DNA from: Bigelowiella natans CCMP2755
Taxonomy: Eukaryota; Protista; Cercozoa
Reading direction: 5' to 3'
Assembly: GCA_000320545.1 (NCBI GenBank)
Contig: ADNK01000048.1
Span: forward strand, 1 to 64,000
Length of the DNA: 64,000 nucleotides
The position numbers and the translations under genes were made by a program. Below, piece by piece: positions 36,954-42,961 of the stretch. Within the stretch, counting starts at the first letter, position 1, and each line of letters begins with the position of its first letter. The notes under the pieces are model-generated. The model was not told where the DNA came from and did not search any database. It saw only the letters and a list, made by a program, of their open reading frames with translations.

Positions 36954-37269
36954 TATTAGCTCTAGAGCTGGTAGGTGTGTGTTTTAGTGAGCCATCCAAT
37001 GCAAGTTTTTGCTCACCACATACTGGCTTTGGTGATGCGGCGGTCATCAATACACGTAGAATAAGCGAAAATGTTGGCATTATTATTTTTATCTTTTTTC
37101 TATTCAAGTTACATTACTACAACATCACTCTTCTAATCCTTATTTCAAGACTCACAATATATGCCCCGCAGCTCCTCGCGAGAAGCATTGTGTGTATGTC
37201 AGCTGCCGTGGTTGCTGCTGCACACATTATTATTCTTCTCACTTTTCTTGCTTAATTCGTTTTGAGCTC

Positions 37270-38079
37270 CTAGTTCCGGAAGCCATCGTCCTTCTTTTTT
37301 GACCACGCTCTGACGCGCAGGAAAACACACACAGATCAGTGAAAATGAGAGCCTACGACAGCCCGATTGTTGTGATTCCCCATTTAGTTTCGAAGCATCA
37401 TTTCTTTGTGTGCATGCTAGCAGGTGGCACCTTTACTCTCAGCCTTCGGTTGAGGCGGGCTTTTCCTGGCCTCCCTCAAGAACGCATTAGGCACCTCCGC
37501 TCTGCTTCGCTTGACCTGCAGTCGAACGTGAATCTCTCTCATTCATTCATTGACAAGATCGTTGAGAATCCTTCTATTCCCCTTCTCAGCCCTCCCGTCC
37601 TCACCACGCCTTCGCTAATTAGAATGCCGAGTAGCTCGGACGTTGCCTCTCCCTTCCCTTTCCTCTCTCCATGCCATCCTCCTCCTCCCACACATGCGAA
37701 ACAACGCCTCACCCTTCGCCTTGGACGAGGTACTTCGCTGTAGCTCGTTTGAACCTAGATGGTGGGAGGTGGTGAGATACGAGTGGTGAGGACATCGATG
37801 AAATATGTCAAAACCTCAACCGTAAGAAATGGGAGGAACTGACCAGCTTGTTTGTGCGTGCGGGGGTCGCATGGTGGCGGTGCTGGTGAGGGTGGGGGTG
37901 GAGGCCTTTTGGAAGATATGAGAACACTAGAGGGTACTCCAGGACCTGAGGAGGAGGAGGAAGAGGAAGAAGAAGAAAAAGGGGAAGATATTAAGATCGA
38001 TAAAGAATAATGAACGAAGAACTCAGTCGAGCCGTGACGTACAGCGGTTAATGTCTCCTCCTCCTTTCAATATCCACAT

Positions 38080-38122
<43 letters not shown>

Positions 38123-38256
38123 TGAGTGATCAAAAGACAAGATGCCATCACAAAGGCTCAAAAGGCTACTGTGCAAAAACACAGAAACCGCTTTTCATTT
38201 CGACGTTTTCCCCGCATGCCCTACAGCACTCTCTACTCATTTCTTGTGAAGTCCGA

Positions 38257-38296
<40 letters not shown>

Positions 38297-38567
38297 ATAA
38301 GTATCATCACCTGGGCCATGGTGGGGCGTTGGATGGACGATTCAGCCAGCATTTTTCTACATGGTATTTGTTGACTCGTCACCACCACTATCATTCGTCT
38401 ACATGAGAGGGGGGGGAAGGGGGGAGGGGGGGGGATCATCATCATAACATAGATCATCCACGAACCAACCGTAAGAGCTGCTGCAAAGGCTTCACGCAGT
38501 TGATGTGTCCTCTCACTTGGGACTTTATCAGAAACTCGACGTACTGGACCCTCGTCTGATGGTTGCA

Positions 38568-38600
<33 letters not shown>

Positions 38601-39923
38601 CACATGTTCAACATGAGGACCACGGGGAGTAGCAGTTGTAGTAGCAGCAGTTATAGTAGTAGTAGTAGTAGTAGTAGTAGTTGTTGTTGTTTATATATAT
38701 ATATATATATATTTATTTATTTATACATGTGTGTATGTGTGTATGTGTGTACGTGCGTCCACGTCTACGTATCTCTACGGTTCTTCTTCTTCTTCTTCTT
38801 CTTCTTCGTTTAAGATTGAGCACCTGGCCAAACGGCGTGTCTTGAATGGCGCAACCCATAGCTAGCTCCAAGATAACGATCCCCAAACTCCAAACATCGG
38901 CCTAGAAGAGAATATTTATCATGAAAACAGCCGAATTTCGTTTGTTTACCAATGGTTTTACGACGTATCTTATTGTTTTATTGTTTTTGGGATCGGTACT
39001 GTGTGAAACGTGGAGGGGGGTGGGGGGGTGGGAGGGGGGGCTGGTCTACGTAACCTTCGATTCGATAATTTTTCTGATCAGAACAAAGAGGAGATGGGGG
39101 TGGAGAGAAAGAGAGGAGGAGGTGGTGGAGGAGGAGGAGGAGGCTGCCCTTCTTGCAACTGACCTCAGTGCCATACGGTTTCTCTGCAAGCACTTCAGGA
39201 GCCATGTAGAGATTGGTACCTTGATATTCAGTCGTCGTGTTTACGAATTGCGTACGCTGTGTATTACAAGGCTTGCGTGCGTGCGTGTGTGCATGCAGTG
39301 GTGGTGGCTTCTTCCGAGAGGTTAGGCAGGATCTTTCACCGCATATGCTCATCTCCGCTGCTCCCGCACTCCACCAGGATGCAGGCTTGGGCATAACCCG
39401 CGACTAGGGAAAATAATAAGGGGAGGGGGGGGGGAGGAGGGAAAGAATGAGGGTTATAATCATGTGCTGGGCTCTCAATCTATCGGCTTTCATTGCTACT
39501 GCAGGCATGCCCACGGAAGGAATCAACTCGAAGACAGTACTTGAAGCTTATTTCTCCTATTATTTCTAGGCCGCAGAAAAGGCGGCAGGGAGGGCGAAGA
39601 TTGGGATGGGTGGAGGGGGAGGGGGAACGAGGACATCTCTCACAGAACGTACACGATAAACAGCCGAATATATAACCGCGAGCACGCACTATTACCAATC
39701 CAAAGTCGGCGATGCGAATGCTGCCATCCGACACGAAGATGTTGTCAGGCTTGAGATCCCTGTGCACGATCTTGCGCTCGTGGATGTACGCCATTGCGCT
39801 GCTCATCTCACCCAACCATTTAAGGAGGGTTTCCTCCTCAAAGCTGTGGTGGTAGGTAGTAGTGAGAGGATAGGAATGAAATTCTAGCCTTCTCCTCCCC
39901 TAGCCTCCCCTCCCCCCTTGCAT

Positions 39924-39973
<50 letters not shown>

Positions 39974-40659
39974 GCATCATGCACATACTTCCTATATACG
40001 CTTAATATCGCCAGTATCTTCTACTATAGTCACATAATGTCTTCTCTATGGCTTAGTCTTTGTCGTTTCCTTCTCTCCCTACTTCTTCTCCTCTCTTCTA
40101 ATTCTTCTTCATCATCTTTTTTCTCTTCTTCTCCCTCCCCCTCTTCCTACTGAGTCTTCTTCTGCAGCAACTCGTAAAGGTCTCCCCCCTCGCAGTATTC
40201 CATTACGATGCACACCTACAAACACACGTCCTTCACACACGTGCCTGTTATTCCTGAGCGGCAGCTACTACTGCTGCTGCTGCTGCTACTAGTAACCTGA
40301 AGGGCCTCGTTCACCTCAGTCGCCGATCGTGCGGTCACACGCTTCATCACCAGCTAAAACATTGTAAGGAGATTCCCCTGCGTTGTGAAGGAAGAAGTCT
40401 CTATACCGCACTATATTCGGATGATCCAGGACACACAGCTGCTTCACCTCCTGAGCGCTTATTATCCTCTACTTGTAGAATGATGTGTATAGCACGTGCC
40501 ATCATCATCATCATCGTCGTCGTCGTCATCATCTTCTTCTCGTCACCATATCGCCGTTCTTCTCTACTTTACCACCCTCGCACCGAATCCTCCCTCGCCC
40601 CCCTCCGACACAAAAAAAATATTTGGACTGAGAACAAAGGAGAGAGGAAGGTGAAAGGG

Positions 40660-40700
<41 letters not shown>

Positions 40701-42020
40701 AAGTTTTTCAGATATGAAAGATCCCCTTCCTCTCTCTCTCTCTCTCTCCTTTCTCATGCACACGCACACACAGACTCCACAACAACGCCTCTCTCCTGTT
40801 GCAGCAGACCCAGCTTCTTGATTACGCGGTATCCGTGGATAACTTCCGGCGGAGCTTTCTTCTTCTTCTTCTTCTTCTCCTCTGCCTTCGGGATGATGAA
40901 AGGGCTCCCAGGACCTAATGCCGGTGGGGTCGACATATCAAATGATGGTGGGGGGCTCTCAGCAACACTAGGCACTATCGATGCAGGAGTCCTGCGCGAT
41001 TCCTCCTTCCGCTGCCGCCTCTTTCGGTTACTGAACGCGCGAAATATCAGGAGGGTGACTATGTACACCACGGCACACGAGATAGTCACGGATTTTATGC
41101 GGGAGGATATCGTCGGGACTGGCCGACAGAGCCCCTCGAAACACTCTGTTGAGATGCAGTCCTCGTCGCTCCAGCACTTGGCGCCATCGGCCCGATGGCC
41201 TCTGGTTGCTGAGCGACATTGCTCTGCAATGCACAAGCCCGATTTGCAGTCGAAGTGTTCCGCACACTTCGCACCGTCTATGCGGAAGAGGTTTGTAGCA
41301 AAACCTGAGGTGATAATTGTAATCATAATAATTCTGAGGGCCATAGCTACTGCACACCACGAACGGCGGTGACTACCATAGAGAGCTTCACCAGTCTGAA
41401 ACGCCCTGACTTCTTTCTCGGCACCGTCTCGATAAAGGATCACCGAACCCATTTTGGAGTCGAATTCAGAGTTGTTGCTCTGCATATTAGACACTCAACG
41501 TCAACATATTACTACGAATGAAAGCAAAATTCCACAATATCACACCAACCTTGGGGTGGATGGAGTGCTCTGCAAAGGTGATTGGAAGACTGCGAAGTTC
41601 TCGTGCAACTTGAACGTACTTTGGCATGAATTCGTTGCATGTTTGACACCAGTTAACCCTTGATATGGGGGAGAGTGTATATGAACAACAGAAGATAAGA
41701 ATGGCAGGCAAAGGGTCTGGCTTCCTCGCTGAGCCATAAGTGGGGCACAGCCGCCTACCTTATGTAGCAAATTACAAGCCTCTTGTTCTCGGTCAGTTTC
41801 TTGAGCTTACCTGCATTTGCTATAGCGCAGCAAGGAGCAGATATGAATCAAGATTCGGAAGAAGGACAGTAGCGTAAAAAGAGAACCGACCGATAGAGAT
41901 GACATCAGTGCTGGATGAGGGGAAATGGCCCTTAGCGTGGGTGAAGCTAGATCCAAACGCAAGAAAGCTCAAGCAGAGTAGACCAGTGGTACGAAATGTC
42001 TTCGCACAACCACCCGCCAT
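37270..42020 (-). CDS. Receptor-like protein kinase: signal peptide, thioredoxin/PDI-like domain (WCQTC), two Cys-rich repeats, TM helix, NEK-like Ser/Thr kinase (two kinase exons out of order)
   Basis: MAGGCAKTFRTTGLLCLSFLAFGSSFTHA; DVISI|ANAGKLKKLTENKRLVICYIR|VNWCQTCNEFMPKYVQVARELRSLPITFAE; DGAKC..DC.S..C....C twice; TM VTISCAVVYIVTLLIF then RKRRQRK; LDHPNIVRY, CIVMEYCEGGDL, IVHRDLKPDNIF, IADFGL, GTNLYMAPE, ADVWSLG, RPTMAQ|VLEYP. Confidence 0.85.
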
Positions 42021-42961
42021 CCTCAATAAATCTTAGCAGCTTACGACAATTTTCACGCGAGTTCGAATGTCCACAGACTATGGAATGCCTCCTGCTCTCA
42101 ACTCTCGTGGTGTCCACAACTGCTCTGATCGCGGTGAGGAATGAGGAGGGGGGCAGAATCCGGAGTTAGAGATTCCGGATAGTAAGACTACTTTTTTACG
42201 AAGTTTTCAGTATAAAATATCATAGTGAAGAAGGTGGAAGAGGTTCCCGCGGTTCGTGTTTTCGGAAACAAGCAAACATAAGTAGACCTATCTTGGGAAA
42301 GGAGAAATGGGAAAGATATGCTAGAGAATGTAGACCATTCAGTGGTCCGTAAAACCAACGGGGAACATCTAGGAGTGGATCATCATGCTCAGATGGTCCT
42401 GTGCCGGTCGTAGGTTGCCACGACTGGTAAAATGGTAAAAACAAAAATCAAGCCGTGAATATCTGGAAATATGTAAAGGACATCATGGAGAATCAAACGG
42501 CTGTCGAACGGCGTTGATCAACGGCTCGACGTCGATGCCGGTGACGTGGTAGCTATCCGGAGGATGGCGTCTGTCCCCACACCATCACCGGCGGGTAGGA
42601 AGCGCAAACGGAGGATTTCGGACTACTTCCAGCTCTCGGCCGCCCAGAATGGCAAGAATGCAACAGTGCTCGGGCCGGTGGTTGCAGAGGCAATGGAACA
42701 GGAATCGGTGCGAACGTCGCCCTCGTAGTCTGATCACCTTCCTCAGTTTCACTCCGCCCTGAGTGACCGAATATCTCTAATTTCCCCCTCTTAGATGGCT
42801 GGGTGGATGGCGGTGCTTGACAGAGCTGATGAGGACAGGAAGCTGCGAGCATTGCTCGTCGTTGATGGAGGAAGCAACTCTTCGGCACCGCACAAGTTCG
42901 AATGCAACACGAATCATTGCAAAGCAAACCAGATAGCTACTAGTTTGCTCCAGTCTGGAAT

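Follow-up and report, generated by a model that had tools for sequence, protein, structure and literature searches.

The window analyzed here, a stretch of 64,000 nucleotides of the Bigelowiella natans CCMP2755 genome (contig ADNK01000048.1, positions 1 to 64,000), carries on its minus strand, at 37085-42171, a gene of 19 exon blocks whose product is a receptor-like kinase of 640 amino acids (P0151/P0292). The exon blocks come from a blastn comparison of two transcript contigs, L011 and L012, with the window, and the extent given for the whole gene is that of L011, from this comparison together with the joints of RNA contigs. A library-wide HMMER search with the exon that bears the HRD and DFG motifs gave three relevant matches, being P0092, of 159 amino acids and identical to the window, and two relatives at 75-77% identity, P0051 and P0055. 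The first of these corresponds to the B. natans JGI model Bigna1 aug1.1_g595, which begins only 3' of a patch at 40216-40605 and represents a partial C-lobe only, with the whole N-lobe left out. When P0055 was used as the query, the complete 640-amino acid product of an MMETSP transcript (P0151) was retrieved, which matches the window exons, along with orthologues in Lotharella oceanica, L. globosa, and Amorphochlora amoebiformis. P0292, a cluster mate of P0151, is encoded on the two JGI transcript contigs L011 and L012.

In P0151, the match to the Pfam kinase domain (PF00069) is complete, covering positions 1-262 of 263 with an E value of 1.6e-63, and the domain holds the β3 lysine and the HRD, DFG, and APE motifs. 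The elements expected of a eukaryotic protein kinase, i.e., Gly loop, β3 lysine, helix-C glutamate, HRD, DFG, and APE, follow each other in this order in the mRNA-derived protein; a colinear reading of the window does not give the same order. The best solved relative is NEK1 (E value of 6e-43), colinear across the whole domain, followed by Aurora A and NEK2 (1e-33), and the closest named homologues outside chlorarachniophytes are STKLD1 and NEK proteins; by these best matches, the kinase may be called NEK-like. The motifs HPNIVRY and IVMEYCEGGDL are common to this kinase and to NEK1, NEK2, and STKLD1-like enzymes. Unlike them, the protein described here is built as a type-I membrane protein, in which a weak thioredoxin-like CxxC domain is combined with a Cys-rich region, and this architecture finds matches in chlorarachniophytes only. 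The layout of the 640-amino acid product comprises a signal-like N terminus, the weak thioredoxin-like domain (WCQTC), the Cys-rich region, a membrane span, and the NEK-like kinase. The N-terminal thioredoxin match of P0151 has an E value of 0.0046, below the Pfam cut-off.

The exons that encode the N-lobe, all on the minus strand, start with the large exon 5 (40810-41304), which runs from the Cys-rich region through the membrane span and the juxtamembrane part into the beginning of the kinase (..IHGYRVIKKL), and whose donor is the GT at 40809-40808, the sole GT option there. In the window, it is followed by the Gly-loop exon (40547-40598, GEGGFGAAFKVEKNGDM in the mRNA), a 96-nt GT..AG stretch with a (GAT/GAC)n microsatellite (40451-40546), and a 75-nt exon, called X' in what follows (40376-40450, EVKQLCVLDHPNIVRYRDFFLHNAG), which covers the end of helix C through β4. 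A 22-nt spacer, GAATCTCCTTACAATGTTTTAG (40354-40375), separates X' from the 57-nt exon Y (40297-40353, LVMKRVTARSATEVNEALQ), which encodes β3, including the catalytic lysine, and the first part of helix C. Then come an 81-nt GT..AG stretch with an (AGC)n microsatellite (40216-40296) and the exon VCIVMEYCEGGDLYELLQKKT(H) (40151-40215), corresponding to β5 and the hinge and joined straight to X' in the mRNA. Both X' and Y are 100% identical to the mRNA. Among the exons of the window, X' comes seventh and Y eighth; in the mRNA, Y comes seventh and X' eighth.

An earlier note, made from the letters of this DNA, had already placed an exon X beginning EVKQLCVLDHPNIVRYRDFFLHNAG from 40450 on the minus strand, exon Y (LVMKRVTARSATEVNEALQ) at 40353-40297, and VCIVMEYCEGGDL from 40215, and reading the window bears out the three assignments. 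Its statement that the window has X then Y, and that a kinase needs Y then X, is also correct. Exon X alone retrieves from the PDB nearly only protein kinases, always from the end of helix C through β4 (NEK1 74-96, NEK2 56-77, and MKK5 77-99); moreover, the mRNA-derived protein is colinear with NEK1, and all orthologues have Y then X. A PDB search with Y alone (20 amino acids) gave no match. In Pfam searches with single exons, only the larger exons score, X alone and Y alone being without match, and when the open frame that runs through X was used as a protein query, for open reading frames on contigs of DNA runs, no candidate was obtained. A 24-nt piece of X' also had no exact match among metagenome contigs, a set in which B. 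natans records seem to be missing.

Other details of the note have to be revised. Exon X had been described as 90 nt long and ending at 40361, but the transcribed X' stops at 40376 (..FFLHNAG, 75 nt), and ESPYN is noncoding. Also, the GTTTTAG that had been taken for a 7-nt intron remnant belongs to the 22-nt 3' splice region of Y. Both strings form the spacer GAATCTCCTTACAATGTTTTAG. This pyrimidine-rich stretch, absent from the mRNA, is the 3' splice region of Y and leaves X' with a GA instead of a GT donor. The GT at 40360, proposed as the donor of X, is unused, the options in the window after X' being GA, AA, or GG only. In this way, the AG/GT borders ascribed to both exons stand for Y and for the acceptor AG of X', but not for the X' donor.

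The transcript contigs L011 and L012 have the order Gly-loop exon, Y, X', VCIVMEY, and P0151 accordingly reads ..IHGYRVIKKLGEGGFGAAFKVEKNGDM, then LVMKRVTARSATEVNEALQ, then EVKQLCVLDHPNIVRYRDFFLHNAG, then VCIVMEYCEGGDL. In the blastn alignment, the Gly-loop block (mRNA 1048-1099) matches the window at 40600-40547 with 90.7% identity, whereas the Y block (mRNA 1099-1157, window 40354-40296), the X' block (mRNA 1153-1232, window 40454-40375), and the VCIVMEY block (mRNA 1231-1296, window 40216-40151) match with 100% identity. This confirms that an active kinase is unreadable colinearly from the window, the mRNA order of Y then X being noncolinear with the reference. Two of the junctions anticipated by the earlier note, from 40547 to 40353 and from 40297 to 40450, are present in L011/L012; the third, from 40361 to 40215, is really from 40376 to 40215. 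Fifteen of the 18 junctions are colinear and of the GT-AG type. The three exceptional ones are adjacent to each other: 40810 to 40598 (GT..GG), Y to X', which runs backward by 154 nt yet has GT and AG signals, and X' to 40215, which is GA..AG at best.

Two other RNA runs from other studies (X15 and X16, in the form of Logan contigs) join 40375 to 40214. In X16, the 185 letters from 40375 to 40600 equal the sum of 76 (X'), 52 (Gly-loop exon), and 57 (the length of Y), and by this length arithmetic the order Gly-loop, Y, X' is consistent with X15 and X16, whose depth bins are compatible with coverage of Y. In the raw RNA reads of X21, the gene is almost uncovered. In four data sets, the RNA contigs follow the canonical order without branching, and no branch in them corresponds to the cis isoforms, i.e., Gly-loop exon to X' over the 96-nt intron or Y to VCIVMEY over the 81-nt intron; the stretch 40451-40546 as an intron by itself is used by no transcript seen. 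Y is always present, contrary to the suggestion that transcripts might always skip it. Circular RNA produced by back-splicing was considered as a source of the Y-to-X' junction and rejected, the junction being found with its flanking exons inside full-length linear contigs (L011/L012) that extend over 42171-37085.

The Gly-loop exon is also altered in the window. Its acceptor is GG and not AG, and the exon ending VEKNGDM, which the earlier note had regarded as intact, is broken in frame, with GEGGFGARVVK (40599-40567) and VEKNGDM (40567-40547) lying in different frames. Pairwise alignment locates the difference at 40571-40578 on the minus strand, where the window has AGGGTGGT and L011 has GCGTTT. 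With 6 nt replaced by 8, the window is 2 nt longer here and loses the conserved FGAAF motif, the orthologues having GAAF or GAAY at this site. The RNA contigs of X15 and X16 also depart from the window here, with 1 nt missing at 40572 and 1 nt at 40578. These two 1-nt omissions are the only differences recorded for X15 and X16 at the site, whereas L011 has in addition two substitutions (GCGTTT versus GGGTGT once two letters are removed). In this case, either the read table omits mismatches beside gaps or the strains differ, and then the mRNA of the reference strain would encode FGAGC, and that of the other strain, as in all orthologues, FGAAF.

Every disagreement in splicing or frame between the reference and the mRNA falls within approximately 40216-40605, a patch bounded by microsatellites, and outside it the RNA and the reference differ by point differences only. 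Six further point differences outside the patch occur in L011 alone, and for this reason L011 seems to come from another strain. Position 40964 is A (plus strand) in the window and C in the DNA run X2, in X15, in X16, and in L011, and corresponds to a reference-specific base around 360 nt from the patch.

A comparison with the orthologues, as the earlier note had advised, agrees with the mRNA. The four chlorarachniophyte orthologues (L. oceanica, L. globosa, A. amoebiformis, and one Logan contig) and NEK1 all carry the order Y then X. The orthologues read ..VLK..NEALQ/VEVKQL..FFLHxxGVCIVME, and in the alignment the joins NEALQ/VEVKQL and FFLHxxGVCIVME are common to P0151 and all four of them.

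With respect to copy number, searches of the 91.4-Mb assembly with the genomic stretch and with the mRNA segment found no second locus. The nuclear genome of B. natans is reported to be haploid (PMC4007541, PMC12730881), for which reason a second-allele explanation was set aside. A single locus in a haploid genome means that the mRNA must come from the locus at 37085-42171.

The sole independent DNA run that was placed, X2, is available as contigs and shows no difference from the window over long stretches including introns, for example 39155-39888. Its only contig on X' matches 40436 to 40375, the remaining 106 letters being unplaced, and no contig is placed on 40256-40374, two points that speak against the arrangement of the reference. 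Such holes prove nothing, and matching tails near repeats stay unplaced (for example, a 69-letter loose end at 40600 matches 40809-40877). If they were colinear with the window, the contig on X' and the next one, which has a head of 44 nt above 40255 (contigs 15 and 14 of X2), would overlap by 31 nt, which is the word size of the assembler behind X2, and the spacing may be the same as in the reference. Taken together, the X2 evidence is ambiguous, displaying neither the X'-spacer-Y junction nor the canonical one. The contig depth of X2 is about 40-50 at the center and about 88 in the flanks, values that are uninformative because the depth ranges from 25 to 89 elsewhere in the gene. The introns at 37200-42100 are packed with microsatellites, (TC)19, (AT)19, (AGT)n, (CT)17, (GA)19, (CAT)11, and (TTC)n, and the Logan DNA contigs all break at them; none of the 14 DNA runs contains more than 0.85 of the sampled words.

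Based on these data, it is very probable that the transcribed DNA is colinear and that the reference is corrupt in the patch at approximately 40216-40605, either by a cloning or consensus artefact or by a lesion in the sequenced culture. The earlier note had kept a recent local rearrangement or a mis-assembly as its fallback, and this is the best explanation. The exon-internal replacement of 6 by 8 nt cannot arise by splicing, and the most economical view is that the mRNA was transcribed from DNA unlike the reference in this patch, the swap then being no real feature of the expressed gene. The expressed gene would then be ordinary and colinear, with Y before X' in the template of its mRNA, and the reference patch would differ from this template by two swapped blocks, a frame-broken Gly-loop exon, and the loss of its AG acceptor. 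As to the origin of the corruption, the chances that it is a rearranged-clone artefact or a low-quality consensus in a Sanger-era assembly appear about even; a genuine complex lesion of the culture that was sequenced, or an additional dead copy, is a possible but more doubtful origin. An artefact might have come from rearrangement of a clone, from PCR or finishing, or from a consensus of poor quality beside microsatellites.

The swapped blocks would be one of 83 nt (CGCTCAG, X', and G) and an adjoining one of 114 nt (the spacer, Y, and 36 nt). Exchanging them would restore the exon order of the mRNA with no base gained or lost, and the resulting introns would be of about 110 nt (GT-AG), 43 nt (GT-AG), and 46 nt (GC-AG). 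The shortest other intron of the gene has 70 nt, and because the 43- and 46-nt introns fall below this minimum, the true sequence may differ further. The 9-mer CGCTCAGGA is present twice in the 64-kb window, where 0.54 copies would be expected with both strands counted, one at the X' acceptor boundary (40457-40449) and the other 43 nt past the Y donor, inside the 81-nt stretch (40260-40252). The borders of the blocks carry short homologies that would be compatible with a polymerase template switch, whether the patch is an artefact or a real lesion. A cut-and-paste model, with X' placed between CGCTCAG and the GAAT 3' of Y, was also tried and discarded, as the intron that remains is of 38 nt with GA-AG ends and as the model disagrees with the X2 depths.

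Nonetheless, some observations speak against a corrupt patch. The 31-nt overlap in X2 hints at the spacing of the reference. Also, the reference shows X' and Y free of errors, which would be unusual if the patch were of low quality, and the block-swap reconstruction requires introns of 43 and 46 nt in a gene with a 70-nt minimum otherwise. Moreover, a swap of less than a read length is an atypical assembler error, and a real molecule, either a clone or a culture variant, must therefore have carried it. In a rival explanation, the order X'-Y would be real and universal and the mRNA would be made by trans-splicing between two pre-mRNAs of the same gene, going from the Gly-loop exon to Y, from the Y donor to the X' acceptor of the second pre-mRNA, and then to VCIVMEY. 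In its favor, X' and Y stand in this order in the reference and match the mRNA at 100%, Y is bordered by AG and GT and X' is preceded by an acceptor AG, the locus is the only one in a genome reported as haploid (PMC4007541), and the length coincidence of X2 contigs 14/15 is perhaps the spacing of the reference seen in independent DNA. A trans route would be needed because the canonical mRNA is impossible in cis from the reference order, the splice from the Gly-loop exon to Y removing X' in the lariat. However, X' is without a GT, GC, or AT donor in the reference, the neighboring exon carries a replacement that splicing cannot give, and the efficient cis products expected from the 96- and 81-nt GT-AG introns are absent from the RNA contigs. 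The flanking introns also have no complementarity to pair two molecules: there is no inverted repeat between 40451-40546 and 40216-40296, and the best regional pairs, of 10-19 nt and low complexity, lie elsewhere. The trans reaction would need to prevail over two good cis introns and to use a GA donor, and we are unaware of any mRNA that is obtained solely by obligate trans-splicing between copies of one pre-mRNA. A full-text literature search on B. natans and scrambled genes returned nothing relevant. We consider this route highly improbable, and hold the same view of X' before Y as the sole arrangement, with obligate trans-splicing or an unknown reordering step and a noncanonical GA donor after X'. 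The trans-splicing or DNA unscrambling that the earlier note had proposed is unsupported in the face of the exon-internal replacement, the missing X' donor, the missing cis isoforms, and the introns without complementarity.

On the other hand, the assembled locus could be a real rearranged dead copy, the mRNA coming from an intact second copy missing in the assembly. The clustering of the swap, the replacement, and the lost acceptor resembles a single replication-repair event with short homologies, and the X2 depth of about 40-50 at the center against about 88 in the flanks goes in the same direction. Still, this explanation is improbable. No second locus was found in the 91.4 Mb, the genome is reported as haploid (PMC4007541), the depth carries no information with values of 25 to 89 elsewhere in the gene, and the reference equals X2 outside the patch in exons and introns, such that the duplication would have to be very recent. 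The idea that transcripts skip Y or X, and that the gene is a pseudokinase or in decay, can be practically discarded: the JGI model does leave out the whole N-lobe, as this idea would have it, but both exons are in frame in all transcript contigs, and they encode a full kinase domain that bears the β3 lysine, HRD, DFG, and APE.

The patch also resembles a local reference defect or a microhomology rearrangement: three neighboring junctions are anomalous and one small replacement is present, all within about 400 nt flanked by microsatellites; the block borders carry short homologies (CGCTCAGGA and GAAT); and the transcripts all disagree with the reference in the patch only. It is unlike a low-quality reference patch in that both displaced exons are free of errors, and unlike a classic assembler mis-join in that the swap is smaller than a Sanger read. 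Trans-spliced or exon-permuted genes are represented by mod(mdg4) and lola of Drosophila, Hsp90 and dynein of Giardia, and mammalian exon repetition or scrambling, and these systems involve separate transcription units, complementary intron halves, or rare or circular by-products. The locus is like them in joining a downstream Y donor to an upstream X' acceptor with GT and AG signals; however, here there is no complementarity, no donor after X', and no cis by-product, and the differences extend into an exon. A trans-spliced gene would have functional signals at every junction, and here the X' donor is GA, AA, or GG and the Gly-loop acceptor is GG; it would also have complementary introns or another joining device, and none was found in the flanking introns. 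In the scrambled germline genes of ciliates (Oxytricha/Stylonychia), segments are joined at pointer repeats. The locus shares with them coding segments that are out of order in one DNA version and ordered when expressed, but its segments coincide with spliceosomal exons, and we know of no germline/soma genome duality in chlorarachniophytes. Pointers of the ciliate type were rejected, the junction overlaps of 1, 5, and 2 nt being splice consensus, and so was CGCTCAGGA as a pointer, which lies in the flanks and not at consecutive segment ends.

Alternative splicing is seen in other parts of the gene. A joint 39217/39338 occurs in X16 only, one X15 contig retains the 39217-39338 intron, and in P0092 exons are skipped toward the 3' end (38309-38903, minus strand). 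Heavy alternative splicing has been reported for B. natans, and the splice variants found here agree with this.

Finally, if the swap were true of the transcribed DNA, this would be the first nuclear protein-coding gene whose sole mRNA needs exon reordering, a major finding for RNA processing, although the evidence points the opposite way. What follows for the B. natans reference is that it very probably has a corrupt patch at this locus and that its JGI model is truncated, with 159 amino acids against the 640 of the real protein. Scans for scrambled genes in the B. natans draft assembly should then be compared first with public transcriptomes. Moreover, judging from its sequence, the gene appears as a member of a chlorarachniophyte-specific family of receptor-like NEK-type kinases that currently has no such annotation.
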